The notes beneath the pieces are model-generated. The model was not told the origin of the DNA, searched no databases, and was given only the letters and a program-made list of their open reading frames with translations. The translations under genes were made by a program, and so were the position numbers. This document shows positions 3,400 to 64,000 of a DNA stretch of 64,000 bases, one piece after another. Source of the stretch: Macrostomum lignano. Taxonomy: Eukaryota. Each line of letters opens with the position of its first letter. Positions within the stretch are counted from its first letter, which is position 1. The stretch covers positions 176,404 to 240,403 of the forward strand of contig NIVC01001762.1 of NCBI GenBank assembly GCA_002269645.1. The letters are read 5' to 3'.

Positions 3400-4200
3400 G
3401 TGGGACCTGAATTGTGATCCCTGAATTGGGACCTGAATTGGGATCTGAAATGGGACCTGAAGTGGGATCTGAATTGGGCCTGAATTGGGACCTGAATTGG
3501 GATCTAAATTGGGATCTGAATTGGGACCTGAATTGGGACCTGAATTGGGACCTGAATTGGGACCTGAATTGGGACCTGAATTGGGACCTGAATTGGGACC
3601 TGAATTGGGACCTGAATTGGGACCTGAATTGGGACCTGAATTGGGACCTGAATTGGGACCTGAATTGGGACCTGAATTGGGACCTGAATTGGGATCTGAA
3701 TTGGGACCTGAATTGGGATCTGAATTGGGATCTGAATTGGGACCTGAATTGGGACCTGAATTGGGACCTGTATTGGGACCTGAATTGGGATCTGAATTGG
3801 GACCTGAATTGGGATCTGAATTGGGACCTGAAGTGGGACTTTAGGTGGGACCTGAATTGGGACCTGAATTGGGACCTGAATTGGGACCTGAATTGGGACC
3901 TGAATTGGGACCTGAATTGGGACCTGAATTGGGACCTGAATTGGGACCTGAATTGGGACCTGAATTGGGATCTGAATTGGGATCTGAATTGGGATCTGAA
4001 TTGGGATCTGAATTGGGATCTGAATTGGGACCTGAATTGGGACCTGAAATGGGACCTGAAGTGGGACTTTAGGTGGGACCTGAATTAGGACCTGAATTGG
4101 GACCTGAAATGGGACCTGAAGTGGGACTTTAGGTGGGACCTGAATTGGGACCTGAATTGGGACCTGAAATGGGACCTGAAGTGGGACTTTAGGTGGGACC
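3400..4200. repeat. 12-bp minisatellite (GGGACCTGAATT)n
   Basis: About 65 tandem units; produces the spurious GPEL/WDLN/QVPI ORFs. Confidence 0.95.
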
Positions 4201-4449
4201 TCATGCATGAATCCTGTTTCTTCCACGGCTCCAAAATCCTTGAGCGCACAAGAATTTCTGGTTCAAACTGCTTTTACAGCTTCAGCTGCAAATAAAGTGC
4301 AAATAAATCGTGTTTAAATTTGCACTTTCACACCGTTGGTCCACGGCAGGGCTATTTAGCGGCTACAGCGGGAGCGGCGGCCCCAGCCCAGCCCGAGACC
4401 GGCCCGAGATCTGCAGAATCCTTATCAGCTCTGCAAGCAACTCAAAAGC

Positions 4450-5694
4450 ATGCTCACTCTGCTTCTCGTTGCTCAGTTCGCTGCAGCTCTTGCAGCTGAG
4501 CAGGGTAAGTTTCCTGGAATATCTAGGAATAGTTGAGTCCTAGCTTCTCCTCTGCTCAACCCTCCTCTCTCAAACAGCCTTCGAGTTCGACGCAGTCACC
4601 GCGACCGCCTCCTGCAATGCGAGCTCAGTCACCGTGAGCGCTCGCAGCGACGTCGAGTGCGCTGTGAAATGCGCTCAGGCCGGAGACCGCCTCTCCTACA
4701 GCTTCATCAACGGAGTCTGTGTCCTGTCCAACAGGGCCGACTGCGCCGCATCCGGTGCTGCAACCGTGTACCGGAAGAAACGCGTGGGACCGGGTGAATA
4801 TTTCAGGTTATTTTTTCGCCTGCAAACAGGGGCAGCGACTGATGACTTGACTCGACTGACATCAAGTCAAGTCGTGGACTCTTTCTGAAGCTTGAGAGCA
4901 CGCAGACCCTGCATCGCTACTCTTAAAGCTGAAAAAATCTGCAAAATCAAACTTAGAAGAAAACTTTTCCGACTAAACACTTTTGCTTCTTGCTGCCCAA
5001 TAGCTGCAAGTTGAGAAGAAAAAAAGCTCACTGCACCAACCACTTCAGATGTTTCGGCCGGATACCTGCGGCAGATCGGCGGCCGGACATTCTGGGTGTT
5101 CCAGCAGAGACAGACGGGTCAAATCGCCTTCAACAGGAACTGGGATGACTACGTCAGCGGCTTCGGAGATGCCACGGAGTTCTGGGCTGGTGAGCATCCC
5201 ATGTGCTGGGTGTAAAACAATGTCTGTGTGAGCTCAACTTGGCGAATCTGCAAGTTTTGACAATTCAAATTGCAGGACTCGAAAACATCCACGATATGAT
5301 TGGGACCAACCCTCGAAACCTGCGAGTCGAGGCCCAGACCTTCGACGGACAATTATACGCGTTCGAGTGGCTCAGCTTCACCGTCGGAGACTCCAGCACG
5401 AACTACACGATGAACTACGGCAGCTTCCTCAGCGCCAACTCTACCATCGACTGCGACTTCTTGTCGGAAGCTCGAGGCCATCAGTTCTCCACCTTCGACA
5501 GGGACAACGACGCTTATTCCACCAGCTGCAGCACCCAGTTTGGGAGCGGCGGCTACTGGTGGGGCGGCTGCATGAACTCCAACCCGAACGGTGTGTACTC
5601 AGCCACGCTGACGTTCGGTCACTCCTTTATATCCTCGAATTGCATTAGGAGCTACGAGACCCCCCGCACGATGCAGATGATGCTGCAGGTGTGA
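4450..5694 (+). CDS. Secreted PAN/apple-like + fibrinogen C-terminal domain protein (FReD copy 1, intact)
   Basis: Exons 4450-4504 (signal peptide MLTLLLVAQFAAALAAEQ), 4578-4793 (SVTVSARSDVECAVKCAQ..SYSFINGVCVLS, PAN-like Cys pattern), 5049-5189 (FWVFQQRQTGQIAFNRNWDDYVSGFG..EFWAG), 5276-5694 (FSTFDRDND..C..GGYWWGGCMNSNPNG). All junctions GT-AG, phase 1, in frame. Motifs match the FBG consensus (WxxYxxGFG, EFWLG, FSTxDxDND, GWW..C..NLNG). Confidence 0.9.
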
Positions 5695-6289
5695 ATTCTC
5701 ATAGGCAAATTCTTTAGAAACGTTATTGAAAACAAAGTAATCAGTGACTACTAGTCAGCATTGCGTGTTTTTTAATTTTATTAAACTTGAAAAATTCAAA
5801 TTGCGACTTTCTGTTTTAATTATCCGGTTCCAAGCTCAGCCGCAAGGTTTAAAATATTTATGAATTTTTATTCAGGCACAATGTATGTTAATATTCATTA
5901 CTTTAGATGTCTAGAAATTTCCTTTGCGTGAGTATGCCTTTCTGTACCTTGCTATGCCAGCTAAAATCATCACATTAAAGCTGCATTCCGATTCTATTTG
6001 TTTTCTATTGATAATAACTCAAAATTTTATGAGCATAGTTAATAAAGTGAGATCAGCATCACCTGTTCTATTCAGTTACTGTGTTTTACTAAAAAATGCG
6101 CTTTTGTCCCACCGAAGTAAACCAATAAAAGTTTGTTTCTGTATTTCGTCCTGGTGTTTTCAGTTATGAATTCTGTGCAGTCTGACACAAAGATTGGCAA
6201 AGCGTAGCCATGAGGTGTTGCGAAATCGAACCAGGGGTCGTCGAGGTGCAACAGTCAATGGCTCCTGGCGTTAACGGCTCCAGAGAGAC

Positions 6290-6612
6290 ATAATAATCAT
6301 AATCATAATCATAATCATAATCATAATAATCATAATCATAATCATAATCATAATCATAATCATAATCATCATAATCATAATCATAATCATAATCATAATC
6401 ATAATCATAATCATCATAATCATAATCATAATCATAATCATAATCATAATAATCATAATCATAATCATAATCATAATCATAATCATAATCATAATAATCA
6501 TAATCATAATCATAATCATAATCATAATCATAATCATAATAATCATAATCATAATCATAACCATAATCATAATCATAATAATCATAATCATAATCATAAT
6601 AATCATAATCAT
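6290..6612. repeat. (ATAATC)n hexanucleotide microsatellite
   Basis: About 53 units; source of the DY/IM ORFs. Confidence 0.95.
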
Positions 6613-7814
6613 ACGCATCATCATCAGTTGACAGACTGGTCAAAGATAATCACACAGGGGTTGAGATGCGCATGCCAGCCAGTCCTTCACTTTTCCACAC
6701 GATATTTTTCAGCTGTTTATCGCCCTCCTAACAGCCTCCCATACAGCCTGGCATCATTCAGCTATAATATAAAATGCTCAATATTATGCATTAAATGCAT
6801 TGTCAAGCAGTCATAAATAATTTGGGCATCGGACAGCCCGCTCTGCAGGCCGGGCGCGCAGTCCTCTGTCCGCCTCAACTCACTGCGACTTTTGATACTG
6901 GAGGCTGGATTAGTAAAAGGGAAGCCAGCTTGTTGATTAGCATGGCTGACAGAATAGCGATGGTGACGCAGAGGGAAAACAGTGGACAGAAGGGAAGCAA
7001 GGGATGAGAAAAGAGGGATCATTTTCTCCCCTTGACTCCTCATCTCCGCACCAGCTGTCTTGAGACTATTTGAAACCAATCAGCGATGGGGAGGCCCGAA
7101 GGCGGGATTGGGCAGGCCCAGAGGTGGGGTGGGGCAGGTTCGATGAGGGGTCGGACAGGCTTATTTAAAAAATGAATAAGATGCCCAAAAGAACAAATCA
7201 TTTACCACAGAAACACCGCTTTGTTCTTGAATAAATTTTATACATACAAAGTCATGTTTTTCTTTTATGTCTGTTGACAAACCCAGACGAGCAGGTGGGC
7301 TTTGCTTTACTCACCTGTTTGGTGCGGATTTTGTGCTTTTCAACTGCCAAGACTTGCCAAGACTGCACTCACCCGATGTAGTTGTACAGAGAAGGAGAGG
7401 GTTTTAGGGTTTAAGAAGAGAGGAAGAGAGAGATTTCATTGACTTGGTTCTGCAGCCAATTGTGTACACCTTCAGCCAAATGCAAATCTAACAAGAAATC
7501 TTAACTTTATAATCTTTCTGCTCACGTACTGCAGATGTACTGCAGAAAGCCTTCATTTTCGGACTCTGTAGCGGACTCCGACAGCAACAAGCAGGGAACA
7601 AAGCCAGTTGGGAGTTCATACCGTTTTATCATTGTTGTTGACTTGTAATTTTAATTCTGTGCCTGCGTTTTGCGCTCCATTTGCTGCATTTAGGTATTGT
7701 AATTATAAAATTTGAGTCGCTGTACCGCGCAACAGGGCATAATAAGGCATTGCCTACTAAAGACTAGCAAGAAAAGAATGTGATAGCAACTCTCTCACAG
7801 TGTGAGCAAAAATA

Positions 7815-7905
7815 GGTGACGTCCTGAAGCAGCGGTTAAGACCGGCTGACAGTCAGTAAGAACTCAGAAACTGGTCCTGGACTTCAGTTCGAATCTGAAG
7901 ACAAG
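7815..7905 (+). mobile_element. tRNA-derived SINE head (degenerate)
   Basis: A-box-like GAAGCAGCGGTTAAG and B-box GTTCGAATC with tRNA-like spacing; no intact cloverleaf. Confidence 0.4.
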
Positions 7906-8294
7906 ACGAAATACGTTAGTGCGGCCTTGTTGACACAACCACTACTCAAAGCTGTGTTGATTGATGGTTAACTAAAGACACATAGAGTTGCAGTATTGCG
8001 AAAATCACAACGTTTAAAAAACGCTGCCTTCCTTTTACTAGATGGAATCTTGAGCTGAAGTGTCAGCAGAGCGAGTTTATTCCCGGTCTCAATAAAAAAA
8101 ATAGTCAATCATAGTCGGGAGCAGGGAGAAACTCAGGTTCTACCTGTACAGTCGTGCGCTACGGTTGCCGCTGCGTTGCTAGGAGCGGAGCGGCAAACAC
8201 GGCAGGGCTATTTAGCGGCCACATCGAAAGCGGCGGCCTGAGACCGGCTCGAGATCTGCAGAATCCTCATCAGCTCTGCAAGCAGCTCAAAAGC

Positions 8295-9614
8295 ATGCTC
8301 ACTCTGCTTCTCGTTGCTCAGTTCGCTGCAGCTCTTGCAGCTGAGCAGGGTAAGTTTCCTGGAATATCTAGGAATAGTTGAGTCCTAGCTCATCCTCTGC
8401 TCAACCCTCCTCTCTCAAACAGCCTTCGAGTTCGACGCAGTCACCGCGTCCGCCTCCTGCAATGCGAGCTCAGTCACCGTGAGCGCTCGCAGCGACGTCG
8501 AGTGCGCAGTGAAATGCGCTCAGGCCGGCGACAGCCTCTCCTACAGCTTCATCAACGGAGTCTGCGTCCTGTCCCACAGTGCTTGTTACACCGCATCCGG
8601 TGCTGCGACCGTGCAGTAGAAGCGCAAGAATACTGGTGAACACTTATTGCTAATTCAGTTTTACTATTGCTTTAGAAGGGTCACTACTTTAGGCACTGTG
8701 AATTTCAATCAAGCTGTCCATGTCCATGCACTGTCCATGCACTTCAGATACACTTCTTACACACTCTTCACACATTCCTCACACACTCCCCATAGCTATG
8801 CATAATGCGTATGTCCGAGAGCATTACAAAATTGAAGTTGAACCAGAAAGTCATTTAAACCAGCAGTTGATACAATCAATTAGTTTACCAACTCAGCACT
8901 GCCACTGCACTAACAGCTCGCACTCATGCGACCAACGCGCACTCCGTTCACCCCTCCAGTTTTTCCCGTCATGAGTCCCGGATACCGGCAGCGGATCGGC
9001 GGCCGGACATTCTGGGTGTTCCAGCAGAGACAGACGGATCAATCGCTTTCAACAGGAGCTGGGATGACTACGTCAGCGGCTTCGGAGAGGCCACGGAGTT
9101 CTGGGCTGGTGAGTATCTTCAGTAGTGCCAAATGCTACCTGCTTGGTGAAATTCTTCATTTGAACCGTGCATTTTCGTGACAACGCAAATTGCAGGTCTT
9201 GAAAATATCCACAATATGACTGCGACCAGCTCGAGAAACTTGAGAGTCGAGACCCAGACCTTCGCGGGAGAGTTCTACGCGTTCACGTATCTCGGCTTTT
9301 CCGTCGGAGACTCCAGCACGAACTACAGGATGAACTGCGGCAGCTTCCTCAGCTCCAACTCCACCATCAGCTGCGACTTTTTGTTTCACCATCGAGGCCA
9401 TCAGTTCTCCACCTTCGACAGGGACAACGACGCTGCTCCTGACAGCTGCAGCACCAAGTATGGGAGCGGCGGCTACTGGTGGGGCCGCTGGATGAGGTTC
9501 AACCCGAACAGTGTGTACTCAACCACGCTGACGACCGGTGCCTCCTACATGGCCTCGTATTGCATTGGAAGCTGGGAGGCCCTCCGTAAGATGCAGATGA
9601 TGCTGCAGGTGTGA
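8295..9614 (+). pseudogene. PAN-FReD copy 2, disrupted
   Basis: Same 4-exon layout as copy 1 (8295-8349, 8423-~8635, ~8955-9109, ~9195-9614). In-frame TAG at 8617-8619 (copy 1 has CGG), a 1-nt deletion in exon 3 (CAATC vs CAAATC), and loss of the conserved Cys (WWGRW vs WWGGC). Confidence 0.8.
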
Positions 9615-10274
9615 AACTGAATTGCTAATTGAATTTGACCCTTTTGGTCTGCGGCGCCTGCTGAGTTCGACATCAAACTGAGCTGAATTTCATAACTGAA
9701 GCAACAATAGAGAAATTCAAAGTAGATATTTTAGTCAGACTGACTTTCTTGTAGCGCTTCGGTGTATTTTTCAAAAAATAATAACTAACTGAAGACAATA
9801 ATAAAATGTTTTGCTTACAATATTCTGAGAATAAGTTTTTTTATCAGTGGTTATTTGGTCTCTGTAAGGCGAGCAGACACAAGACAGCAAGAAATATTCC
9901 ATTTCAAGTTCAACCATCCTTTGCTTACAATTTGCTATGATGGGCATCAGTGGTCTGGAAGTTACCAGGCCATGGATGGAGTGAAATCCAAGCAGACAAC
10001 ATCCGAAAAACGAGGCCGCTCAAACTCCAGTTGTCTGCAGGTGTAACAATGAGACTTAATTCTGTCGATATGACTGACTGTATAAGATTGTTTTTGGACG
10101 CAAATCTGACAGAAGAGCATTGTACATTATGTACATTATAACAGATGGTAGTGCTAGAGATGGCACAAAAAAACGGAAGACACGGGACTGAGGTAGGAGA
10201 TTAATTTAAGAGAGATCAACTTTGCTTTGATGAAATCCGCCAATCGAAGAAAGAAAGGGATACTAGTTGCTAGG

Positions 10275-11460
10275 GGGTTGTGGATAGGCTTCTGCGATGC
10301 TACACAACTGCACCCAATAGCCGGAGAAGTTTGGGCTTGGGTTCCAAACTGACTCACAAGCCGACCCAAGGGTTCGCGTCCCTTCGCACGTGTTCAGGCA
10401 GTTGTAGGACAGGGGTCCGGCGGCGGCAATCTATCCGTGGCCTTGGCTTTTGACTTAGCCGTGTTCTTCAGAGCTGCGGCTCTTAGAAACAGATTCTACC
10501 CTCTGACCTTAGCGTTGTGTCGTGTAACCTGACTGACCAACTTAATGATAGATAATATTTTACGAATATTTCTACTATAACGTAAATGCTACCTATATTA
10601 TTATTATTGTCTATTACTTATACTGCCACTTTAAGTAGAGTAGTTGATAAATTATCTGTATAATGTATTATTAATCACGTGATATCTCTAGCTCTTGAAT
10701 TTATCGATCGTGCAGTTTTTCTAGTGTAGTTAAATTATCGATCATGTAGTTTTTCTTAAATAACAAAAATATAAATAAAGCAACTGTGCGCACCTGGCAC
10801 TTTACTGTTCAACTCAACTGGAAAACTTCAAGCCTTGGCTACACAATACTTAGCTTGGTATGCGGCAAGTCCGCAGGCTCCGTAGGCAGCCTCCTCGTCT
10901 CTCTCAAGAGCCCGGTGTGAAGCACCGCGCTGATGGACCATTGGTTCGGCCTCTGACTGGGCTCCTAGCGGCGAGCTTCTCGGTTGCTAGCGGTAGGGTC
11001 GGTAAGAGCTTAAGCCACCTCACGGTCGTTATTCTGGAACGCCAACCGAGGTTGGTACGGTTGGTCAAGCGGATTTTTGCAGCAACTTATGAACTTTTGG
11101 TGCATCCCACTCTAATAGCCCCGCCGACACTCAGCATAATACCGAAATGACACGACCACAGGGCAGCAGGCTCCACATCTCTAAGAAGAAGGCCCGTAGC
11201 ATCGCTCGCTTCCAGGAATTCCGCCGGCGCAAAGCGGAAAACAGAGGAGAGCGGAAGCCGCCTCTTCTGCCTCTAAGGAGGATGCCGGCAACTGTAGCCT
11301 GTTGGCTGGAGGTCTTAACCACCGGGTCGGCCGCAGGGAAGCTTCTGCCAGTGCGACAGCCGGTTTTATTCCAGAGCTGGCGGAAAGATTCAAGACCTGA
11401 TCGGTCTGAGCAGGGAGGCGCTAGCCATCGAATTCGGAACCTGCTTATTAATTAATCCTA
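10275..11460 (+). mobile_element. Decayed 5' end of a retroelement (relative of 11460-13000), interrupted by a nested insertion
   Basis: Blocks 10290-10470 and 10855-11035 align to the reverse complement of 12540-12990 (e.g. TGACTCACAAGCCGA; GGCGGCAA..ATCCGTGGCCTTGG; AGTCCGCAGGCTCC; CGGTTGCTAG). Confidence 0.6.
10514..10848. mobile_element. 335-bp AT-rich nested insertion (solo-LTR- or MITE-like)
   Basis: Absent from the sister copy; flanked by direct CTTAGC (10508-10513 and 10849-10854); short terminal inverted TTGTGT/ACACAA; internal AATAAA. Confidence 0.55.
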
Positions 11461-13000
11461 AAGGGGGTCCTCTTCACTCATCACTGTCACCGTCGCTGTC
11501 ACCACGCCTCACAGGCCACTCGGAAACAGAAGATACAGCTCAGCCTCACAACCCCACATTGAGGCTTTTTTCCCTTGGCATTGATACACTTGGCATATGG
11601 CTTTCGAATAGCTCGTTTGCCGCTTGCATCATGTTTGCCGAGGCCGCGATGCAGTGGGTGCAGCTTAAGCTGCAGGATGTCCACTCCAGAGATTCCACGG
11701 GTGGTCCGCACAGCTTCCTGCTGGCTCAGGGCGAGTTGTGCAGGAGAGCTGCCTCTTCTGCCTCGCCGATGGCTCCAGACTCCAGTTCCATCGGCTCCCT
11801 CGGGGCCGCCACCGGGGCCGTGAATGAGAATTCCGCATCAGCCTGACAGAGACAGAGAGCATCCAGCTATCCGACAGTCCGAGGATTGCCGTGAAACCGT
11901 CTCCACCCGGCTTGGAGATGTTCTCGTGAACTACGACGCCATTGGCCAGCAGCTCTGGATTGGAGCACTAGCAGGCGGTGCAGCTCGTCGGCCTTGGTGA
12001 TGGAACTGCGAGCCGGAATCCAGACACGGTGCCGGTGTGTCCGGGATCGCTCGTCCTCCCTGTAGATGAACAGATTTTCCAGCTCCGTATCCCAGTCGAA
12101 GGCTTTCAGCATTTCGAGAAGCTGCTGCCCAGACTGGCTGTCGGCGGGCTGGATGTGAAGGGCCTGGTCCTCGACTTTCGTCTAAAGGACTTGAAATGAC
12201 GGTACCGCTCAAGGCCATCTTGACCAGGTGCATGGGAGTTGTCCCTGGTAGCGAGCAATGCTATGGGCCTTCTTCTTAGAGGTCCGAGGTCCCCGGTCCT
12301 ATTATCCAGCCACTTCGGCAGTGTCCTGAATGGCGGCAGGGGCTGGTTGAGAGTCACCGGAAGTTCCGGTGTTGCGAATGTCCGGCTGCGCAGTACCAAC
12401 CTCGCAGTTAGTGCTCCAGCAGCATCAGGGGACGCGTCGGAAGTAAATGAATACTCCATGAGTCGCTTAAAGGTGAATGGGGACTAATTAAGAGGTGAGA
12501 AGCTGCTGGGCCGTACCCCAAACCCAACAGACAGCCAAAAGAATAGCGACCGGGAGGTTTAGCTTTACCCGCCCGACCACTAGCAACCGGGAAACTCCCC
12601 GGCTAAGAGCTCGGTTTGAAACCAGAGGCCGAACTAAAGGTCCATCGCGCGGTGCTACAATGGGTCTTTGAGGGAGGACAAAAAGGCTGTCTCTGGAGCC
12701 TGCGGACTGGCCGATACCCTGTTAAGGTCAGATCGAGGGTGATACTGATACCTGTTCCTCAGAACCGTGGCCAGAGGTACCTGATACGAACAGGTGCACT
12801 ACCGGGCAGAGACCGTACCCAAATCGGACAAGACAGAAGCCAAGGCCACGGATTGGGTTGCCGCCAACGGAGCCCAGCAGAACTAGAGCTGCCTTACATG
12901 CTGGACGTAGATCGGCTTGTGAGTCAACTTGTAGAGAGTTCTCCTGCCATTCCTGCACCAGAATAGAGGGTGCAGGTGTGAAGGATCGCAAACCTTAGCT
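11460..13000 (-). mobile_element. Decayed non-LTR-like retrotransposon 5' half (leader, ORF1 remnants, start of AP endonuclease)
   Basis: Frameshifted ORF1-like pieces (12459-12106, 12112-11867) are followed by DILQLKLH[H]CIAASANM..AIRKPY, resembling the ILQINLHHCxAAS..LIQEPY start of R1/LOA-type APE domains (judged by eye). No RT present. Confidence 0.5.
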
Positions 13001-14953
13001 TGTGATTGTGAGCCTTGTCTGTCTCATACTACACAGGCATGCTGAGACCGCCATAGTATGCTAACATTAAGCTCAGATTTTATCAAATTTACAATAATGA
13101 AACACGTCTATAAATGAAACCAGGAGAAAGGTTTCTACGAAGATGCGTAGTGTTAGTTTTTTTATTATAAGCTTCTTATAAATAAAAACGCGGAGTTTTT
13201 TTGCTTAAATTTACATACTTAACTGGCAAATTTTAAATTTAGAAATGCATGGGAAGTATCACACCAAGGAAAATACTAAGTCTATAATATGTTAGTTATA
13301 GTTGGCATTTGGCAAACAACAAAGGCTTATTATTATCACTTATTTAGCTAGATTTAAGAGATTTAATAAGAGAGAGGATTTGTCAGATCAGATTAACTTA
13401 TTTGGCATGATGTAAAAGTATGATGAATGATGTTAAAAGAAAATTAGACCCTATAGTTTGTTATATATCCCATGGCCATATACTAAAAATGGTTTGTCTG
13501 TGTGTGTGTGTGACTATCTATTAAAAATATTAAATTGAGAAGCCTATTAAAACTATTAGGACTATTAAAAATGAATTTGAATAATTTTTAATGAATTTCT
13601 TAACTTTCTAAATATTTCTAAATATAAAGTCAGAGAGGAAATCAAGAAAATTTTATTGTTCAGCAATTTTCCTATTTTATTCATAAAATTCTTGACATTT
13701 TAAAAATTCCTTTTTTGTTTGAACTATAATTGTATAAATAGTTGGAACATTAATTAAAGGAGAGGCTTTTCTAAATCCTAGCTTCCCTAGTATAGTATAG
13801 ACCTAATATAGACCCCAATGCACCACATATTTATATGAACCTAGTTGATGGCACCTGGGCCCATGCAAAGACCAAGTTTCACAATATATGAGGAACCAGT
13901 GATGCATTGTTTTCCTCACATTTAAAGGAGTTCTTATAATACAAGCTTCACACTTTATCAATGCCTTTGGCCTTTGGGCATATTAGGAATACCCACTATT
14001 ATCCTTGCTAGGGCCTAGTTATTATTATTACATGCTATTATGCTATGTGTAGGCCCTATGCTATGCTGCATGCTTATAGGTTATAGCCATTAGGGCCTAA
14101 CATTATGGACTAGGGCCCTTATAACTATTAAATTGACTATAATTAATTATTATGTCTAGGCCTACTACAAAAAAGGAATTAAAGGATCTAGTTATAACAT
14201 AGAATGTTTTTCTATGGCTCCAATGCATTTTAGGCCCAATACTAACTTTTAGGCATTGTTGCCAAGTAGGTTTTCACTATTTTAGCATTTTTAGATTTAC
14301 TTTTATCAATAGATAAAGGATAAAAAACTAAACAGACTTAAAAACAACCAATTAGAAATTGGTTAACTAAAAATATTATAAACATTATTAGTAAAAGCCA
14401 AAGTTTTGGGGCGAAAATGATCATAGTGCCTAATAGACAAAATACATTACAAAAATTTAAGCAAAAATTAGGATACAAAAATGTTTTTATATGTAACTTT
14501 TTATTACTTGACTAATTTTCAAAAGTAAGGATTTTAATATTGGTTTTAAAATGTTGAATAATGAGTATGCAGCATGGGAAAATAAAAGATGAGTATTATT
14601 ATTGAGTAATAAAGCTTGAATAGGCCTAATATCTACTCATTGTAAATAAAAAAAGATTATTTTCAGAAGCAGCAAAATTTTACATGTAACTGTACCTTAG
14701 CTTTCTAGTTCGGGTGCTTACTTAAAAAAGGAACTGATCTATTAATATGAATAACACACAACAAAGGCTTACCACCAGCCACTGTGATTTTGTTTAGCCA
14801 TGAAAATCATGGATATATGATGCAAGTCAGGATGTCCTAGTTTAATTAATTCATTCATTCATTTTCCTTCTTACCAATTACAGGAGCTAATGCCACTTGG
14901 ACAGGCCTTCTTTCTCCTTTCCATCTCTCTGAACTAATCCTTGCCAAGCAGAG

Positions 14954-16517
14954 ATGGACCCAGCTGTGCAGACCTCAGTGCTGTCAGTCATAGCATTGAT
15001 TGCCTGCTTCACTGTCAGCCTGCTTGTCTGCTGCTGCTGCGCCAGGTTCTGGGGGCGCAGGCGCTACCAGCCCACCTCGGCTGCCGAAATCAACAGGCCG
15101 CTGCACACTGGCCGGGGGCTGCCCGGCCGGGCCGAGAGGCTGCAGCAATCTATAGGAAGATTCTCCGCCTCCATCAGGTGCGGCTGCTCAAAGTATATGT
15201 GAGAGTAGACAGGATGTGAGAGTTAGAGTAGACAGGATGTGAGAGTAGACAGGATGTGAGTGGACAGGGTGTGAGTGGACAGGGTGGGAGTGGACAGGAT
15301 GTGAGAGTAGACAGGATGTGAGAGTAGACAGGATGTGAGAGTAGACAGGGGATGAGAGAGTAAACAGGATGTGAGAGTAGACAGGATGAGAGAGTAAACT
15401 GGACGTGAGAGTAGACACGGTGTGAGAGTAGATAGGATGAGAGAGTAGACAGGGTGTGAGAGTAGATAAGATGTGAGAGTAGACAGGATATCAGAGTAGA
15501 CAGGATGTGAAAGTGGACAGGATGTGAGAGTAGGCAAAAATGTGCATAATCGATGGAAGAGAATTTACATAGTTAGAGAGAGAAGTAGAAAACGAGGAAG
15601 AGAAAATATTGGAGCAGAAAGGTAGGCAGCCGAGTAGAGTAGACAGAAGGGGGAAAAGGGCTGAGAACACAGGGCAGGGCAGACAAGGGGCAGAGAACAC
15701 AGGGCTAGGGCAGACAAGGGGCAGAGAACACAGGGCTAGGGCAGACAAGGGGCAGAGAACACAGGGCTAGGGCAGACAAGGGGCAGAGAACACAGGGCTA
15801 GGGTAGACAAGGGGCAGAGAACACAGGGCAGGGTAGACAAGGGGCAGAGAACACAGGGCAGGGCAGACAAGGGGCAGAGAACACAGGGCTAGGGCAGACA
15901 AGGGGCAGAGAACACAGGGCTAGGGCAGACAAGGGGCAGAGAACACAGGGCAGGGCAGACAAGGGACAGAGAACACAGGGCTAGGGCAGACAAGGGGCAG
16001 AGAACACAGGGCTAGGGCAGACAAGGGGCAGAGAACACAGGGCTAGGGCAGACAAGGGGCAGAGAACGCAGGGCAGGGCAGACATGATCAGCAATTTCGT
16101 GTCCTAAGATACCCTCAATAACAATGCAGACGGAAGTTCCGCCGTCAGCGCTCCATCAATCGGGCCCTGACTTCTGGCGATGCCTGCAGCAATGGCGGCG
16201 GCGGGGGCATAGACACGACAGGCGGACTCACCCTGAACCCCAGTGTCTATCACCGCATGGAGACCGGGCACTACAACACTGCATTTGAGAGTTGCTACGC
16301 TGAAGAGGAGCGGCCAGCCTGGCTGAGTGGCCCAGTGGGCAACGGATTTTCAAACGGGGCTGGAGGCGCGGGACCCCAGTATCCTTCAAATCGGCACTTG
16401 AACTCCCACGACAGTACTCGGCATCAGCTTCAGCTTCATCAGTTACAGCATCAGCAGCATCAGCAGGTTGCGCGGCCTGACAGACAAGGCCGAAGGCAGA
16501 ACGAATCGGCTGTATGA
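14954..16517 (+). CDS. Orphan single-pass membrane protein, 203 aa
   Basis: Exon 14954-15177 (MDPAVQTS, hydrophobic VLSVIALIACFTVSLLV, CCCC, basic RFWGRRRY) splices in frame (AG|A, GT-AG) to 16130-16517. An acceptor at ~14883 implies an upstream 5'UTR intron. Confidence 0.7.
15200..15530. repeat. 17-bp intronic minisatellite (GAGAGTAGACAGGATGT)n
   Basis: Tandem units starting just after the donor. Confidence 0.9.
15660..16080. repeat. 31-bp intronic minisatellite (GAGAACACAGGGCTAGGGCAGACAAGGGGCA)n
   Basis: About 13 tandem units. Confidence 0.9.
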
Positions 16518-21800: not shown

Positions 21801-24800
21801 TCACCAATACATTCATCAATCTATTCACAAAAATTTTCACCAATACATTCACCAATATATTCACCAATACATTCACCAATTAATTCACCAATCCATTCAC
21901 CAACCTCTTACCAATCTATTCACCTACCTCTTACCAATCCATTCACAAATGCATTCACAAATGCATTCACCAATCCATTCACCAATCCATTCACAAATGC
22001 ATTCACAAATGCATTCACCAATCCATTCACCAATCCATTCACAAATCCATTCACCAATACATTCACAAATCCATTCACCAATCAATTTACCAATCCATTC
22101 ACCAATACATTCACAAATCCATTCACTAATACATTCACAAATCCATTCACCAATACATTCACAAATCCATTCACCAATCCATTCACAAATCCATTCACCA
22201 ATACATTCTCCAATCCATTCACCAATACATTCACCAATCCATTCACCAATACATTCACAAATCCATTCACCAATTCATTCACCAATACATTCTCCAATCC
22301 ATTCATCAATACATTCACCAATCCATTCACCAATCCATTCACCAACACATTCACAAATCCATTCACCAATACATTCACCAATCCATTCACCAACACATTC
22401 ACAAATCCATTCACCAATTCATTCACCAATCCATTCACCAATCCATTCACCAATCCATTCACCAATCCATTCACCAATCCATTCACCAATCCATTCACCA
22501 ATCCATTCACCAATACATTTACCAATCCATTCACCAATCCATTCACCAATCCATTCACCAATACATTTACCAATCCATTCACCAATACATTCACCAATCC
22601 ATTCACCAACCTATTCACCTCCAGGACCCGGCGGCGGGAGGTTCCGAAGCTTTCCGCATGCGCTCCTGCAGCGACATCCAGCAGGACGTCGGCGCAGTCT
22701 ACGCCAACGACAATCCGGCCTTCAACTCCGAGATGGAAGCCGACGCCGCGGCCGGGTACGACACCTCGCTGGATTTCCCAGGCGGCCTCCAGCGGGCCGA
22801 GCCGGACGAGTCGAAGACGGCGCGGTGAGTTCGATGAGTTCAGTTTTGAGTTCGATTGCGTGTCGACGCGTCAAGTTGATGGATCACTGACAGGCTGATT
22901 GGTGGGTCACTGACAGGCTGATTGGTGGGTCACTGACAGGCTGATTGATAGGTCACTGACAGGCTGATTGGTGGGTCACTGACAGGCTGATTGATAGGTC
23001 ACTGACAGGCTGATTGGTGGGTCACTGACAGGCTGATTGATGAGTCACTGACAGGCTGATTGGTGGGTCACTGACAGGCTGATTGATGGGTCACTGACAG
23101 GCTGATTGGTGGGTCACTGACAGGCTGATTGATGGGTCACTGACAGGCTGATTGATAGGTCTCTAACAGGCTGATTGATAGGTCTCTAACAGGCTGATTG
23201 ATAGTTCACTGACAGGCTGATTGATAGGTCACTGACAGGCTGATTGATGGATCACTGACAGGCTGATTGATGGGTCACTGACAGGCTGATTGGTGGGTCA
23301 CTGACAGGCTGATTGATGGGTCACTGACAGGCTGATTGGTGGGTCACTGACAGGCTGATTGATGGGTCACTGACAGGCTGATTGATAGGTCTCTAACAGG
23401 CTGATTGATAGGTCTCTAACAGGCTGATTGATAGTTCACTGACAGGCTGATTGATAGGTCACTGACAGGCTGATTGATGGGTCACTGACAGGCTGATTGA
23501 TAGGTCACTAACAGGCTGTTTGATAGGTCACTGACAGGCTGATTGATAGGTCACTGACAGGCTGATTGATGGGTCACTGACAGGCTGATTGATGAGTCTC
23601 TGACAGGCTGATTGATAGGTCACTGACAGGCTGATTGATGAGTCACTGACAGGCTGATTGATAGGTCACTGACAGGCTGATTGATGGGTCACTGACAGGC
23701 TGATTGATAGGTCACTGACAGGCTGATTGGTGGGTCACTGACAGGCTGATTGATGAGTCACTGACAGGCTGATTGATAGGTCACTGACAGGCTGATTGAT
23801 GAGTCACTGACAGGCTGATTGATAGGTTACTGACAGGCTGATTGATGGGTCACTGACAGGCTGATTGGTGGGTCACTGACAGGCTGATTGATGGGTCACT
23901 GACAGGCTGATTGGTGGGTCACTGACAGGCTGATTGATGGGTCACTGACAGGCTGATTGATAGGTCTCTAACAGGCTGATTGATAGGTCTCTAACAGGCT
24001 GATTGATAGTTCACTGACAGGTTGATTGATAGGTCACTGACAGGCTGATTGATGGGTCACTGACAGGCTGATTGATAGGTCACTAACAGGCTGATTGATA
24101 GGTCACTGACAGGCTGATTGATAGGTCACTGACAGGCTGATTAGTGGGTCACTGAGAGGCCGTTCACTCCCTGCCCAGGTCTCGCCGTTTCCAAGAGCTC
24201 GATGTGCACAGCTCGCCGAAGACTTCAGTGGCGAGGAAGCCGTCCCGCCTGGACGAGCGCATGAAGCGGGTGTCCCGCGTTCAGATGCAGAAGCTGTCCC
24301 GTACCGGCCAGGAGTCCTTCGGCGAGGCCGACGGTGTTGTGTCCGGCGGCCGGAAGCGGTCGCAAGTGGGCCGGAAAGTGTCCACCGCCAGCTTCACGGG
24401 AGTTGAGCGGCGGGCCAACTATCTGACGCGCTGGATGCTGGGTGAGGCTGGGACTTCAGGTTGATCTATTTGGCGGTGCTGGGTTCGAATCTCAGTCTCA
24501 CCAAAATATGAAATCAAATCCTTCTCCTACATGAAGGTCCTGAGATCTAATCCCAGTCCTACCTAGAGGTCCTTGGTTCGAATCCCATTTTTCATAAAGT
24601 TGCGAGTACGAGTCCCAAAATTTTTTTAGAGAGTCTTGAGTTCGTATCTATAAGTCTTGGGTTCGTTCCTGGTCTCATCGCTCGTATGAGATTCTATGGG
24701 TCCAATACTTACAAAACTTGATTATTTTCAACTCCATCTTGGGTTTTCTTGGGTTTGAAACAGCAAAAAGTGGTTCTTCAGTAAGTTCGTAAAAAATAAA

Positions 24801-27800: not shown

Positions 27801-30162
27801 CCATAAAGATACCCATAGACAATCACAGACACCCATAGAAACCCACAGACACCCACAGAAACCCACAGACACCCACAGAAACCCACAGACACCCAGATAC
27901 CCACAGAAACCCACAGACACTAACATACACCCACAGACACCCACAGACACCCAGACACCCACAGAAACCCACAGACACCCACAGACATCCACAGAAACCC
28001 ACAGACACCCACAGAAACCCACAGACACCCACAGACACCCACAGACACCCACAGACACCCACAGACACCCACAGACACCCACAGACACCCACAGAAACCC
28101 ACAGAAACCCACAGAAACTCACAGACACCCACAGTACCCAAGCAGAGATCAACAACCCAGCCTTGTCTGACTGGTTTCCCCGCCCCCAATTCCCCCAGGC
28201 TATAACTGGATGATCCCATTCGAAGGCGGTGGCGGCTTCCCCATCGTGGTCATCGTGCTGATCGTTGGCATCGCCCTGGGCATCCTGGTCTACTTCACCT
28301 CGTCCGACTTTGAGCCGCCGAAATATCACGCAGCGTTCGCCTTCATCGGCTTCCTGACGGCCATCGTGTGGATCTACACGTTTGCCAACGAGGTCGTCAA
28401 CATCCTGGAGAGCGTCGGCTCCATCTTTCGGATCAGCAGCACCATTCTGGGGCTCACCGTGCTGGCCTGGGCGAACTCCATCGGAGGTGCGAGAGGGAGA
28501 GAGAGAAGGGGGGCCTCCGATGAATCGAGCTAGCGGATGAGAGTCAGATTAAATCAAAGACAGTCAGACAGACTCAGGGAGAGTCAGATAGACACAGGGA
28601 GAGTCAGACAGACTCAGGGAGAGTCAGACAGACTCAGGGAGAGTCAGATAGACTCAGGGAGAGTCAGATAGACTCAGGGAGAGTCAGATAGACAGGAAGA
28701 GTCAGATGGAATCAGGGAGAGCCAGACGGAATGAGCTGGGTCATACAGTCGCAATGAGCTGTGTCATACATTCGCAATGAGCTGGGTCATACAGTTGCAA
28801 TGAGCTGGATCATACAGTCACGATGAGCTGGGTCATACAGTTGCAATGAGCTGGGTCATACAGTCGCAATGATCTGGGTCATACAGTCGCAATGAGCTGG
28901 GTCATACAGTCGCAATGAGCTGGGTCATACAGTCGCAATGAGCTGGGTCATACAGTCGCAATGAGCTGGGTCATACAGTCGCAATGAGCTGGGTCATACA
29001 GTCGCAATGAGCTGAGTCATACAGTCGCAATGAGCTGGGTCAACAGCCGGAGCCGCCATCCCGCAGACGTGATCGCCAACACGGTGCTGGCCCGGCAGAA
29101 TTTCCCCCGCGTGGCCATCTCGGCCTGCTTCGGCGGCCCGCTGTTCAACTTGCTGCTGGGCGTCGGCATCCCCTTCACCATCAAACTGCTCAGCGACGGC
29201 ACCACAGAAATGCGGGTGAGTCAGTGGTGACTCCGACACACTGCCTCACCTTAGCTTGCCGCCATCGACTTACCCACTGACCCAGAGCCTCCCTCATTGA
29301 CTCAGAGCCTTTGTTGTTGACTCAGAGCCCCCTCGTTGACTCAGAGCCTCCCTCGTTGACTCAGAGCCTCTCTCATTGACTCAGAGCCTTTGTCATTGAC
29401 TCAGAGCCCCCTCGTTGACTCAGAGCCTCCCTCGTTGACTCAGAGCCTCCCTCGTTGACTCAGAGCCTCTCTCATTGACTCAGAGCCTTTGTCATTGACT
29501 CAGAGCCTCTCTCATTGACTCAGAGCCTTTGTCATTGACTCAGAGCCCCCTCGTTGACTCAGAGCCTCCCTCGTTGACTCAGAGCCTCCCTCGTTGACTC
29601 AGAGCCTCCCTCGTTGACTCAGAGCCTCCCTCGTTGACTCAGAGCCTCCCTCGTTGATTCAGAGCCTTTGTCATTGACTCAGAGCCTTTGTCATTGACTC
29701 AGAGCCTCCCTCGTTGACTCAGAGCCTCCCTCGTTGACTCAGAGCCTCCCTCGTTGACTCAGAGCCTCCCTCGTTGATTCAGAGCCTTTGTCATTGACTC
29801 AGAGCCTTTGTCATTGACTCAGAGCCTCCCTCGTTGACTCAGAGCCTCCCTCGTTGATTCAGAGCCTTTGTCATTGACTCAGAGCCTTTGTCATTGACTC
29901 AGAGCCTCCCTGATCATTAATTCAAATTAGGCTCCCCCACTCCTTGTCCATCGCCCCGCAGATCGAGGCTTCGGTGGTGCAGCTGCTGCTGGTGGTGTCG
30001 GTGACGGCTAGCCTGATTGTCTCCATGGTGTACCTGACCGTGATGCGGTTCAAGCTCGGCCGCGTCTACGGCATAATCCTGATTGTGCTGTACCTGGCCT
30101 TCCTGGTCGTCGCCCTGCTGGCTGAGACCGGCCAGCTGCCCCCTCTGATTGACAGAAATTGA
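18860..30162 (+). CDS. SLC8B1: NCLX/NCKX6-like cation:Ca2+ exchanger (CCX family)
   Basis: Exons ~18860-19020, 19619-19760, 20419-20471, 20562-20731 (alpha-1 repeat LSQNVAGVTLLALGNGAPDIFS), 21271-21569, 22625-22826, 24179-24442, 24830-25107, 25563-25694, ~26447-26861, 27260-27391, 28199-28487 (LGLTVLAWANSIG), 29068-29216 (DVIAN..AISACFGGPLFNLLLG, alpha-2 repeat), 29962-30162. The N-terminal Cys pattern and W..ILN..H motif match NCLX. Start codon not located. Confidence 0.88.
19080..19560. repeat. (TCAC)n microsatellite in exchanger intron
   Basis: About 120 units. Confidence 0.95.
19880..20400. repeat. 32-bp minisatellite (TCAGTCACTAATTCAGTCACTCGGTCACTCAC)n
   Basis: Tandem units ending ~20 nt before the acceptor at 20418. 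Confidence 0.9.
21660..22620. repeat. 12-bp minisatellite (CCATTCACCAAT)n
   Basis: Fills the intron; explains the HSPI/TNPF part of ORF 21294..22898. Confidence 0.95.
22880..24160. repeat. 23-bp minisatellite (TCACTGACAGGCTGATTGATAGG)n
   Basis: About 55 units filling the intron. Confidence 0.95.
25120..25400. repeat. 34-36-bp minisatellite with core GGATTGAATGTACATC
   Basis: Tandem units after the donor at ~25108. Confidence 0.85.
25900..26250. repeat. 20-bp minisatellite (AGAGTCAGACAGAATCAGGG)n
   Basis: Tandem degenerate units; same family at 28540-28730. Confidence 0.85.
26900..27185. repeat. 37-bp minisatellite (GAATGTACATCTCTAGCCTCTGGGGAAGGAAGGAATT)n
   Basis: About 7 units. Confidence 0.9.
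27640..28135. repeat. 10-bp minisatellite (ACCCACAGAM)n
   Basis: Tandem units with a degenerate 5' flank. Confidence 0.85.
28540..29040. repeat. 20-bp array followed by 23-bp (ATGAGCTGGGTCATACAGTCGCA)n array
   Basis: Two adjacent tandem arrays in one intron. Confidence 0.9.
29275..29910. repeat. 20-bp minisatellite (TGACTCAGAGCCTCCCTCGT)n
   Basis: About 31 units. Confidence 0.9.
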
Positions 30163-32856: not shown

Positions 32857-51615
<18,759 letters not shown>

Positions 51616-60283: not shown

Positions 60284-61423
60284 TCAAGGAGCACCTCCGC
60301 ACACCTGCAGCATCATCTGCATCACATGGAGAGCCTTGTATCTTCCAATGCAAGACGAGGCCATGAAGGAGGCGCCGGACGCCTTAGTGAATGAGTGCAG
60401 ACCGTTCGGGTTGGAGTTCATGCACGTTTCCCACCAGTAGCCGCCGCCATCGAAGTTGCTGCTGCAGCTCGATCCGAAAGCACCGTCGTCCCTGTCGAAG
60501 GTGGAGAACGGCCGGCCTTTAGCTGAGTACAGAAAGTCGCAGTTAATGGTGGAGTTGGCGCTGATGAGGAAGCTGGCGTAGTTCATCCTGTAATTCGTGC
60601 TAAAGTCCCCGACGGTGAAGCCGAGCCACTCGAGCGCGTAGAACTCTCCGTCGAAGGTCTGGGTCTCGACTCGGAGTTGCTTAGCGCCGGTCACAGTAAC
60701 ACTGCGGATGCTCTCGAATCCTGCAGTTGACGGGAGAGAATCCTTTCGATTGCTTCTGGTGTCCTAAGAAGACTGGCCAATCGGACGGCGGACTCACCAA
60801 TCCAGAACTCGACGGCATTCCCGAAGCCGCTAGCGTAGTCGGTCCAGTTCCTGCCGAAGGCGATCTCTCCCGTCTGTCGCCGCTGGAACACCCAGAATGT
60901 CCGGCCGCCGATCTGCTGCTGGTAGCCGGGACTTTTTCGGGAAAAACTGCATGATATGGTGGAAGGAGTGCGGTTTATGGGAATGATGAATTAGAAATCA
61001 CCATTTTGTTCGCCGACGGTCATGCTTTCCAAGCCAGCAAGGCTACAATGTAAAAAACTCGCCACTGCGCTTCATGTACACAACTGCAGCAGATGGTGCG
61101 GAACAGCTTATGCTCGTGCTGTCGGACAGGACGCAGACTCCGTTGATGAAGCTGAATGAGAACATGTCGCCAGCTTGACCGCATTTCATAGCGCACTCGA
61201 TTTCGCCTCGAGCGCTCACGGAGATCGAGCTGGCTGAGCAGGAGAATTTTGCAGCGGCTAAGTCGAACTCGAATACTATGAGATGATTGATCAGTTCGTG
61301 AGATATCAATATCTGGTATGTAAAATTTACATTCACAGGTAGACAATTTACCGGTTGCTTACCTGGATTAGCGGCTGCAGCAGCAGTCACAAGCAGCAGC
61401 AGACTGAGTAGTGGTGCGAGCAT
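60284..61423 (-). CDS. PAN-FReD copy 3 (one apparent 1-nt frameshift)
   Basis: Exons 61423-61363 (signal peptide), 61275-61063 (PAN-like), 60946-60798 (WTDYASGFGNAVEFWIG), 60720-60284 (FSTFDRDD..GGYWWETCMNSNPNG). Exon 3 is one base short in an A-run (GAAAAAGT). Confidence 0.8.
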
Positions 61424-63251: not shown

Positions 63252-64000
63252 ATGAAACTCCTTGCTTTTCTCAGTCTGCAGTTTTTTGCTGCCTTTGCAG
63301 CTGCCTCAGGTGAGTTCAGGTCCGGTTTGTTAAGCGATCATTAAATACTTAATACTCGTAACAACTCAAATACGGTCCGGTAACAAATTTCAATACAGAC
63401 TTGAACAACAACATCGCCAGCATCGAATTTGACGCGGTCACCGCGAAAGCCTCCTGCGATGCCAGCTCGGTCACCGTGAGCGCTCGCAGCGACATCGAGT
63501 GCGCAGTGAAATGCGCTCAGGCCGGCGACAGCCTCTCCTACAGCTTCATCAACGGAGTCTGCGTCCTGTCCGACAATGCTGACTGCGCCGCATCCGGTGC
63601 TGCGACCGTGTACCGGATGCGCGCTGCACCGGTGAGTAACTAAAGTTCAGATTATCCTTCTAACCGACTTTCAATGCTTTCAATGCTGTACTATTTAACT
63701 CCAGACGCAACAGCTGCCATCGAAGCTACTGAAACTACCAGAATTTCTGAACCTACCGGATCACCTGAAACGGATGAAGAAACGCCGGAAACTACCGGAA
63801 CATCTGAAGCTACTGAAACGTCTGAAACTACCGAGGCCACCGGAATGAGTTCAAGCAACCCGACTGGCATGCTGATCGGGCTTTCGGATACCAGCAGCAG
63901 ATCAGTGGCCGGACATTCTGGGTGTTCCAGCAGAGACAGACGGGTCAAATCGCCTTCAACAGGAACTGGAATGACTACGTCAGCGGCTTCGGGAATGCAC
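63252..64000 (+). CDS. PAN-FReD copy 4 with Thr/Glu/Ser-rich stalk (runs off the window end; apparent 1-nt indels)
   Basis: Exons 63252-63309 (MKLLAFLSLQFFAAFAAAS), 63399-~63630 (PAN-like, near-identical to copies 1/2), 63705-end (DATAAIEATETT..ETTEATG stalk, then GYQQQISGRTFWVFQQRQTGQIAFNRNWNDYVSGFG in a shifted frame). Confidence 0.75.

Follow-up and report, generated by a model that had tools for sequence, protein, structure and literature searches.

Four copies of a fibrinogen-domain gene in Macrostomum lignano

We analysed a 64,000-nt stretch of the Macrostomum lignano genome (contig NIVC01001762.1, positions 176,404-240,403 of the forward strand), hereafter called the window and numbered from its first base. 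It carries copies of a gene for a small, putatively secreted protein with a signal peptide, a cysteine module and a fibrinogen-like (FBG) domain. These genes form a real, undescribed, lineage-restricted FBG family that evolves by birth and death with 5' gene conversion. A tblastn search with copy 1 recovers exactly four copies, and a relaxed search (E<=5) yielded no further copies in the window. One copy is intact (copy 1), one is clearly dead (copy 2) and two are doubtful (copies 3 and 4).

Copy 1 has four exons, its introns are all GT-AG and in phase 1, and its open reading frame (ORF) of 276 aa is uninterrupted. Copy 4 is cut by the window end and its last FBG exon lies beyond it, so that the suggestion of an earlier note, made from the letters of the window, that copies 3 and 4 add further variants holds, as far as the FBG exon goes, for copy 3 and not for copy 4. 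At 63705-63880 copy 4, like its near-twin P0001, also has a mucin-like linker of ~55 aa, rich in Thr, Glu, Ser and Pro, between the module and the FBG domain, which copies 1-3 lack. In copy 4 the linker is in frame only with the weaker GTAACT donor at 63636.

Table 1. Family copies and neighbouring features, in window coordinates
Feature	Position	Strand	Description
Copy 1 promoter-proximal block and 5' untranslated region	4342..4449	+	Upstream end of the tract in common with copy 2 (8198-8294); contains TATA-like CTATTTAG
Copy 1 exon 1	4450..4504	+	Signal peptide MLTLLLVAQFAAALAAEQ; ends in phase 1
Copy 1 intron 1	4505..4577	+	73 nt; within the recently homogenised tract
Copy 1 exon 2	4578..4793	+	216 nt, symmetric phase 1-1; PAN-like Cys module
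Copy 1 exon 3	5049..5189	+	Start of the FBG domain (GGRTFWVFQQRQTGQIAF...EFWAG); A subdomain shrunk to 'SAGYLRQI'
Copy 1 exon 4	5276..5694	+	Remainder of the FBG domain; stop codon 5692-5694
Copy 2 upstream block	8198..8294	+	Homologous to copy 1
Copy 2 exon 1	8295..8349	+	Same sequence as copy 1 exon 1
Copy 2 exon 2	8423..8635	+	In-frame TAG 8617-8619; module Cys displaced (SACY for RADC)
Copy 2 exon 3	8960..9108	+	1-nt deletion in A-run 9041-9042; frame shifted
Copy 2 exon 4	9196..9614	+	No indel or stop; C235W (TGG 9489-9491); nearest relative is paralog P0002
Copy 3	60284..61423	-	Exon 1 61423-61363; exon 2 61275-61059 (or -61047); exon 3 60946-60798; exon 4 60720-60284
Copy 4	63252..64000	+	Cut by window end; exon 1 63252-63309; exon 2 63399-63631/63635; linker and FBG start from 63705
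Na/Ca-exchanger fragment	28171-28530	+	PF01699, E=2e-9
Possible STAR-type C-terminal ORF	41672-42055	-	~7 kb from the KH-I exon; no Pfam match
KH-I (KHDC4/BBP-like) exon	49213-49584	-	E=7e-10
Ribophorin I (OST1) exons	54802-55479, 56559-57089	+	Pfam PF04597, E=5.5e-82 and 5.6e-07
16-nt minisatellite, 1 kb	55472-56503		Fills the ribophorin I intron
Other minisatellite arrays (examples)	3401-4187, 6293-6624, 22876-24160, 40236-41584

An FBG domain without its A subdomain

That an FBG domain is present is clear from Pfam: the profile Fibrinogen_C (PF00147) matches residues 104-251 of copy 1 with E=2.8e-32. At 112.8 bits the score lies above the cut-off of 22, and the match spans positions 42-193 of the 221 in the profile. 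In the PDB, 68 FBG chains match at E<1e-5, the best being tenascin-R, ficolin-3 and ficolin-1 (E=1e-21 to 1e-22), and the FBG domains of tenascin-R, ficolins and angiopoietin-likes align from about residue 45-50 to 190. Because the profile match covers this range and the PDB alignments start only around residue 50, we conclude that the A subdomain is gone and that the ~30 C-terminal residues are peculiar to the family. Neither the 'VYCDM' strand nor the two cysteines of the A-domain disulfide are present, and the three-subdomain fold is incomplete.

Exon 4 of copy 1 encodes a Ca2+ loop DRDND (211-215), the P-domain cysteines C221/C235 and a family-specific cysteine pair C196/C259. The segment FSTFDRDND-x5-C...C aligns with ficolin-3 and tenascin-R, and both the Ca2+ loop and the P-domain disulfide appear to be retained. 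Their spacing matches Asp393/Asp395/Cys401-Cys414 of FIBCD1, our reference for residue mapping (PMC3908420). C196 (~5450-5452) and C259 (~5639-5641), in the motifs CDFL and NCI, occur together in all copy-1-type paralogs (copies 1-3, P0001 and P0002) and are both missing in P0012 (SDVL, SGV). This pattern points to a disulfide bond, specific to the subfamily, that would link the divergent C-terminus with the P-subdomain.

The equivalent of FIBCD1 His415 is M, M, M, M, L and Q in copy 1, copy 2, copy 3, P0001, P0002 and P0012, respectively. The Tyr405 equivalent is aromatic (F/Y225), and the region of the Tyr431, Ala432 and Trp/Tyr443 equivalents is not alignable, lying beyond the end of the profile match. 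A classical acetyl site is not supported by these residues; with Met, Leu or Gln where the pocket cysteine should be followed by histidine, the proteins probably do not have the ligand specificity of the classical acetyl pocket.

A PAN-like module at the N-terminus

The signal peptide is followed by a cysteine module of ~70 aa, for which the earlier note had proposed a relationship to PAN/apple domains. AlphaFold, supplied with an alignment of six module sequences, predicts a β-β-α-β-β-β topology (mean predicted local distance difference test, pLDDT, 83.7; predicted template modelling score, pTM, 0.69). In a Foldseek search of the PDB with this model, ranks 1-13 are all PAN/apple domains (plasminogen, HGF NK1, factor XI apple 4), at E=0.37-1.5 and template modelling scores of 0.42-0.52. 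Of the PAN/apple profiles considered (PF00024 and PF14295), PAN_1 matches in register two of the six modules, those of copies 2 and 3, with a best score of 14.7 bits against a gathering threshold of 21.4 (E=0.028). In hhalign, 17 columns around the ECAxKC helix motif align with five reference PAN domains (P=0.015, probability 3%). The in-register profile match, the fold model with its Foldseek ranks and the helix-motif alignment speak for the proposed relationship, each falling short of significance when taken singly. Given that these three weak lines converge, the module is likely to be PAN/apple-like.

Other searches with the module returned little. A word-indexed profile search of 5.8 billion proteins produced 35 candidates, none of them scoring, and a profile search of the PDB gave no PAN match, only intimin at a noise level of E=0.37. 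A full HMMER scan of 1.84 billion representative sequences returned ten matches, of which only P0012 is genuine; the other nine are repetitive bacterial surface, immunoglobulin (Ig) or low-complexity proteins, unrelated by Pfam. Neither full-length copy 1 nor the modules gave an Ig-family Pfam match, with a threshold as loose as E<=10. An AlphaFold prediction of full-length copy 1 from the single sequence was unusable (pLDDT 40).

Close relatives were found only in M. lignano

All close homologs are M. lignano proteins. P0012 (PAA91134.1, 283 aa; Fibrinogen_C E=2.3e-31) is a divergent member with the same architecture. Its gene has three exons, introns 1 and 3 being kept in position and phase; because the module and the start of the FBG domain lie in one exon, the module-FBG junction is validated independently of splice models. 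On contig NIVC01000094.1 the P0012 gene and a 58-60% identical neighbour make up a second tandem pair (10001-12008 and 14415-15693), hereafter the sister cluster. This neighbour has stops in the N-terminal module region and an intact last exon. Intact relatives elsewhere in the genome are P0002, P0012 and P0014, and the family appears small, with about 6-10 distinct sequences found.

Among 1.8-5.8 billion proteins, no relatives with the PAN-like plus FBG architecture were detectable outside M. lignano. Three further candidates (P0017-P0019) were set aside as canonical FBG proteins of other organisms, with an A domain and a different architecture. Searches for Macrostomum with fibrinogen, for FBG with PAN, and for the locus tags and accessions found nothing relevant in the searchable literature.

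The family is poorly annotated: the P0003 and P0016 entries contain out-of-frame stretches and P0002 begins at an internal Met. Copy 1 matches UniRef100_A0A1I8H7A6 (P0015) at 226 of 227 aligned residues, with a 17-residue gap in the alignment. This 768-aa entry, compared with window positions 4381-5595 and 8139-8616, is a chimeric read-through model: it strings together a P0002-type FBG gene, translated intergenic and 5' untranslated sequence, copy 1 with a skip of 17 aa, and exons 1-2 of copy 2 up to its TAG.

Copy 2 is a mosaic of two paralog lineages

Copies 1 and 2 are nearly indistinguishable at their 5' ends and strongly diverged at their 3' ends, and our comparison reproduced every count of the earlier note on this point. 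Exon 1 is identical at 55 of 55 nt and intron 1 at 71 of 73 (z=8 against shuffles). Exon 2 has five differences in its first 150 nt, after which divergence climbs to about 30%. According to blastn, homology begins at 4342 in copy 1 and 8198 in copy 2, 108 nt upstream of the ATG in copy 1, and further upstream the similarity is at chance level. Identity is ~97% from the ATG to nucleotide 150 of exon 2 and lower in the upstream block. It then falls off sharply, and the tract ends around 4728-4768 of copy 1. The tract contains scattered differences and an 11-nt indel. Beyond it, introns 2 and 3 and both flanks show only chance similarity (z<=1.9). Exon 4 has 70 differences over 419 nt (69 in the 414-nt codon alignment) without an indel, and 42 of 138 residues differ, including the replacements SEA>FHH, YST>APD, NS>RF and FGHSFISSN>TGASYMASY.

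The 5' identity does not reflect constraint, since copies 3 and 4 have an exon 1 and an intron 1 unrelated to the versions in copies 1 and 2. The 5' gene conversion suspected in the earlier note is thus borne out as a recently homogenised tract. The 3' half of copy 2 has a different affinity. At the junction of its intron 2 and exon 3, the final 22 nt of the intron and the start of the exon are like copy 3 and P0002 and not like copy 1, and its FBG domain is 80% identical to P0002 as against 72% to copy 1, with the HH, AAP and GASYMAS motifs common to copy 2 and P0002. Only 6 of the 42 replacements are unique to copy 2, and 7 are unique to copy 1. With its FBG domain nearer to P0002, few changes of its own, and introns 2 and 3 and flanks at chance level, copy 2 is, on these sequence comparisons, a mosaic in which a copy-1-like 5' tract of ~430 bp sits on the 3' half of an older paralog lineage. 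The contrast between a conserved front and a divergent back is therefore mostly a product of recent 5' copying between neighbours. Most of the divergence between copies 1 and 2 is an inherited difference between paralogs, neither decay nor recent adaptive change.

Within exon 4 we found no sign of further exchange. Synonymous differences do not lie significantly beside the replacement patches, as patchy conversion would predict (p=0.63, 0.08 and 0.08), and no switching of nearest neighbours by segment was seen among the five paralog proteins, whose relationships are nearly star-like.

Constraint is weakest in the last exon

We estimated omega, the ratio of nonsynonymous (dN) to synonymous (dS) divergence, by the Nei-Gojobori method, using copies 1, 2 and 3 as the window DNA for exon 4. 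Omega is 0.29-0.57 in exon 2 and 0.18-0.48 in the exon 3 core, where copy 1 versus copy 2 is an exception (1.66) that is noisy and involves very few changes. In exon 4 it reaches 0.65-0.93, the upper value coming from copy 1 versus copy 2, with bootstrap 95% intervals of 0.54-1.84, 0.40-1.04 and 0.42-1.20. The last third of the exon (aa 230-276) gives 0.9-1.9, resting on about three synonymous changes. For the same last exon in the sister cluster, P0012 versus its tandem neighbour yields an omega of 0.22 at a dS of 1.35. In the window cluster, constraint on the gene is thus lowest in the C-terminal FBG exon; its omega is not demonstrably above 1, and the asymmetry does not extend to the whole family.

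The earlier note attributed this pattern to a diversifying family of recognition receptors, in which positive selection acts on the binding surface of the P-subdomain and gene conversion keeps the 5' half uniform. Some features of exon 4 agree with such a history. Its omega is the highest in the gene, and the intact copy 1 branch has a value of about 0.84 in a three-taxon decomposition. The 69 coding differences between copies 1 and 2 are spread evenly over codon positions (27/22/20), and 18 codons have at least two changed bases where 10.2 would be expected (permutation p=0.0007). Among the five paralogs, 31 of 138 positions have three or more residue types, clustered at 200-201, 215-219, 233-234 and 246-252. 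These clusters flank the Ca2+ loop and the equivalent of FIBCD1 Cys414, a cysteine framing the acetyl site of FIBCD1 and tachylectin 5A (PMC3908420); in this respect the earlier observation of variability near the loop and P-subdomain was accurate. As long as copy 3 is left aside, the module of the window copies (1, 2 and 4) changes at a rate about 2-3 times lower than that of the FBG exon.

We nevertheless regard diversifying selection as unlikely. None of the comparisons gives an omega significantly above 1, and in the sister cluster the same exon has an omega of 0.22 at similar protein divergence. The estimates rest on three DNA sequences, of which one is a pseudogene and a second doubtful. 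Nor does the 5' half remain conserved throughout the family: between copies 1 and 3 the module has diverged as much as the FBG domain (27 of 70 versus 53 of 138 residues; dN 0.279 versus 0.247 for exon 4), so that a conserved 5' half describes copies 1, 2 and 4 and not copy 3. The variable residues 143-149 are not part of the binding subdomain. Distinctly unlikely is the broader idea that this free-living flatworm independently evolved a diversified repertoire of FBG recognition proteins on a new scaffold of PAN/apple plus A-less FBG, by short-tract conversion and positive selection, as a platyhelminth analogue of snail fibrinogen-related proteins (FREPs) and mosquito FBNs. If true, a uniform front end for secretion and oligomerisation would be kept while the residues around the Ca2+/ligand site diversify.

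Defects in copies 2, 3 and 4

Copy 2 is a pseudogene, as the earlier note suspected: it has the in-frame TAG in exon 2, the 1-nt deletion in exon 3 and the C235W loss of a conserved P-domain cysteine (Table 1). The UniRef model A0A1I8H7A6 stops at the same TAG (..GAATVQ). Use of a CA|GTAGAA donor would open the frame, but this rescue was rejected because the core GGRTFWVFQQ strand then becomes out-of-frame residues and the product is non-functional. The ORF of copy 3 is open only via a non-consensus intron 2 donor (GTTTTT or GTAGCC, phase 2), and in copy 4, compared with its near-twin P0001, the frame is broken by 1 nt near 63885. The three 1-nt breaks are all deletions, two of them in A-runs, and it is possible that they are assembly errors; the substitutions in copy 2 are not explicable in this way.

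These defects invite the view that the cluster is a graveyard of non-functional copies and that the FBG divergence records relaxed or absent constraint. The frameshifted stretches of P0003 and P0016, the omega of copy 1 versus copy 2 and the even spread over codon positions would fit this view as well. However, copy 1 is intact throughout, all its splice sites being canonical, and P0002, P0012 and P0014 are intact elsewhere in the genome. Exon 4 is free of indels and stops in every copy over 414-432 nt, and 62 of 138 positions are invariant among the five paralogs, including the Ca2+ loop and the cysteines. Copy 2 has no excess of changes of its own, which also runs counter to the earlier suggestion that part of its divergence is neutral decay. 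The frame breaks themselves could be errors of long-read assembly. We consider neutral decay of the cluster very unlikely.

It is highly improbable that copies 1 and 2, or their 5' identity, are products of mis-assembly or haplotype duplication in this repeat-rich, partly polyploid genome: M. lignano assemblies are repeat-rich and duplicated, minisatellites occupy 28% of the window, and the copy 1 5' untranslated region in P0015 is slightly unlike that of the window (H versus Y and a small indel), so that several versions of the locus exist, but the order of copy 1 and copy 2 and the TAG recur in that slightly different model, the scattered differences and the 11-nt indel of the homogenised tract are unlike a pasted duplicate, and 17% of bases differ between the 3' halves, whose introns are unrelated, which makes the two copies true paralogs.

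Surroundings of the family copies

About 28% of the window consists of minisatellite arrays with 12-37-nt units (31 arrays with a Tandem Repeats Finder score of at least 200). One of them, a 65-copy array of the 12-mer TGGGACCTGAAT, approaches the copy 1 promoter block from upstream to within about 150 nt, and the interval separating copy 1 from copy 2 contains an (ATAATC)n array. Other coding sequences noticed in the window are listed in Table 1.

A probable birth-and-death family with a relaxed C-terminus

On the account we favour, and hold to be reasonably probable, the family evolves by birth and death, conversion at the 5' end has produced a mosaic, and constraint on the C-terminus of the FBG domain is relaxed. 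The family members would be small secreted proteins in which a signal peptide precedes a disulfide-bonded module of ~70 aa, probably PAN/apple, and an FBG domain that lacks the A subdomain and is predicted to keep the B/P core, the Ca2+-binding Asp loop and the P-domain disulfide. Among possible functions, a soluble, Ca2+-dependent lectin-like binder seems the most likely. The P-subdomain would bind the ligand, and the PAN-like module may serve as a second binding or oligomerising surface, possibly through its odd fifth cysteine (C3 without its C4 partner). The family would evolve through tandem and dispersed duplication, pseudogenisation and ectopic recombination. Under this scenario, a recent copying event between copy 2 and its neighbour copy 1 involved ~430 bp (from -108 to about +150 of exon 2), the 3' half of copy 2 would descend from a different, older P0002-like lineage, and the FBG C-terminal exon would be under the weakest constraint (omega about 0.65-0.9).

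Several observations weigh against parts of this account. Every PAN test stays below significance (Foldseek E>=0.37, Pfam 14.7 of 21.4 bits, hhalign 3%). With the pocket histidine replaced and the last ~30 residues unalignable to known FBG domains, lectin activity is uncertain; an immune, self-recognition or lectin role is a conjecture from domain content. Three of the four window copies carry a defect, and the local cluster may be largely decaying. The 5' transfer could have run in either direction, and either the 5' or the 3' half may have been the one replaced. Finally, exonic dS (0.04-0.37) is far below what the chance-level introns imply (4794-5048 versus 8636-8959, and 5190-5275 versus 9109-9195). 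The coding sequence has a GC content of 0.77 at third codon positions compared with 0.44 for the introns. Such a low dS beside unalignable introns would reflect either exon-limited homogenisation, synonymous constraint or very fast intron turnover; homogenisation or synonymous constraint would distort the omega values, upwards or downwards.

Invertebrates have repeatedly expanded fibrinogen-related families for the recognition of pathogens and glycans, and we know of no such family described in flatworms. M. lignano is tractable for transgenesis and RNA interference, so that a small, lineage-specific family of secreted lectin-like proteins is directly testable in it. The locus also illustrates, cleanly and on a small scale, that the pattern of a conserved module with a hypervariable domain can be imitated by 5' gene conversion between paralogs that lie next to each other. 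We regard it as a modest discovery at the level of annotation, and not as a demonstrated diversifying immune system.

Comparison with known FBG and PAN systems

With tachylectin 5A, ficolins 1-3 and FIBCD1 the M. lignano proteins appear to share the FBG B/P core, the D-x-D-x-D Ca2+ loop, the P-domain disulfide and secretion, as well as the aromatic residue at the Tyr405 equivalent. Ficolin-3 and FIBCD1 also have the same spacing from the Ca2+ loop to the first P-domain cysteine. The collagen-like Gly-X-Y stalk of ficolins was not found in any copy, its place being taken by the cysteine module, and the membrane anchor and coiled coil of FIBCD1 are likewise missing. Compared with acetyl-binding FBG lectins, the M. 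lignano family lacks the A subdomain and its disulfide, has Met, Leu or Gln in place of His415, a loop before the second cysteine that is one residue longer and the extra C196/C259 pair, and its C-terminal ~30 residues (Tyr431/Ala432/Trp443 equivalents) do not align.

Snail FREPs, mosquito FBN/FREP proteins and the fibrinogen-related domain (FReD) proteins of bivalves and amphioxus resemble the M. lignano family in being lineage-specific secreted FBG multigene expansions with a non-FBG N-terminal module. Tandem clusters, pseudogenes and conversion among paralogs are further likenesses, gene conversion having been reported in expanded invertebrate FReD families (PMC12074976). In contrast to these families, that of M. 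lignano appears small, and its host is a free-living flatworm. Where snail FREPs carry one or two Ig superfamily (IgSF) domains, or others a coiled coil, it has the PAN-like module. Somatic diversification of snail FREPs is documented in the IgSF1 region and not in the FBG P-domain, which makes the analogy with FREPs a loose one.

The N-terminal module shares its predicted β-β-α-β-β-β topology with PAN/apple domains, namely the N domains of plasminogen and HGF, the apple domains of factor XI and prekallikrein, and apple lectins of apicomplexans such as Sarcocystis SML-2. The 'E-C-A-x-K-C' helix motif is matched by plasminogen 'EECAAKC', and the β-hairpin cysteine that follows the helix ('GVCVL') is comparable to 'QQCVI'. 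Some PAN/apple domains are themselves lectins or dimerisation modules. The M. lignano module differs from them in lacking the C4 cysteine (RLS), which leaves an odd cysteine, in its shorter length (~70 aa), in a last cysteine only 8 residues after C5 and in its sub-threshold Pfam scores. The profile match, the Ca2+ loop and the predicted disulfide place the family within the FBG/FReD superfamily, as an invertebrate FReD multigene family. Lacking a collagen stalk and IgSF domains, its members are neither ficolins nor snail-type FREPs, and they are not demonstrable acetyl-site lectins.

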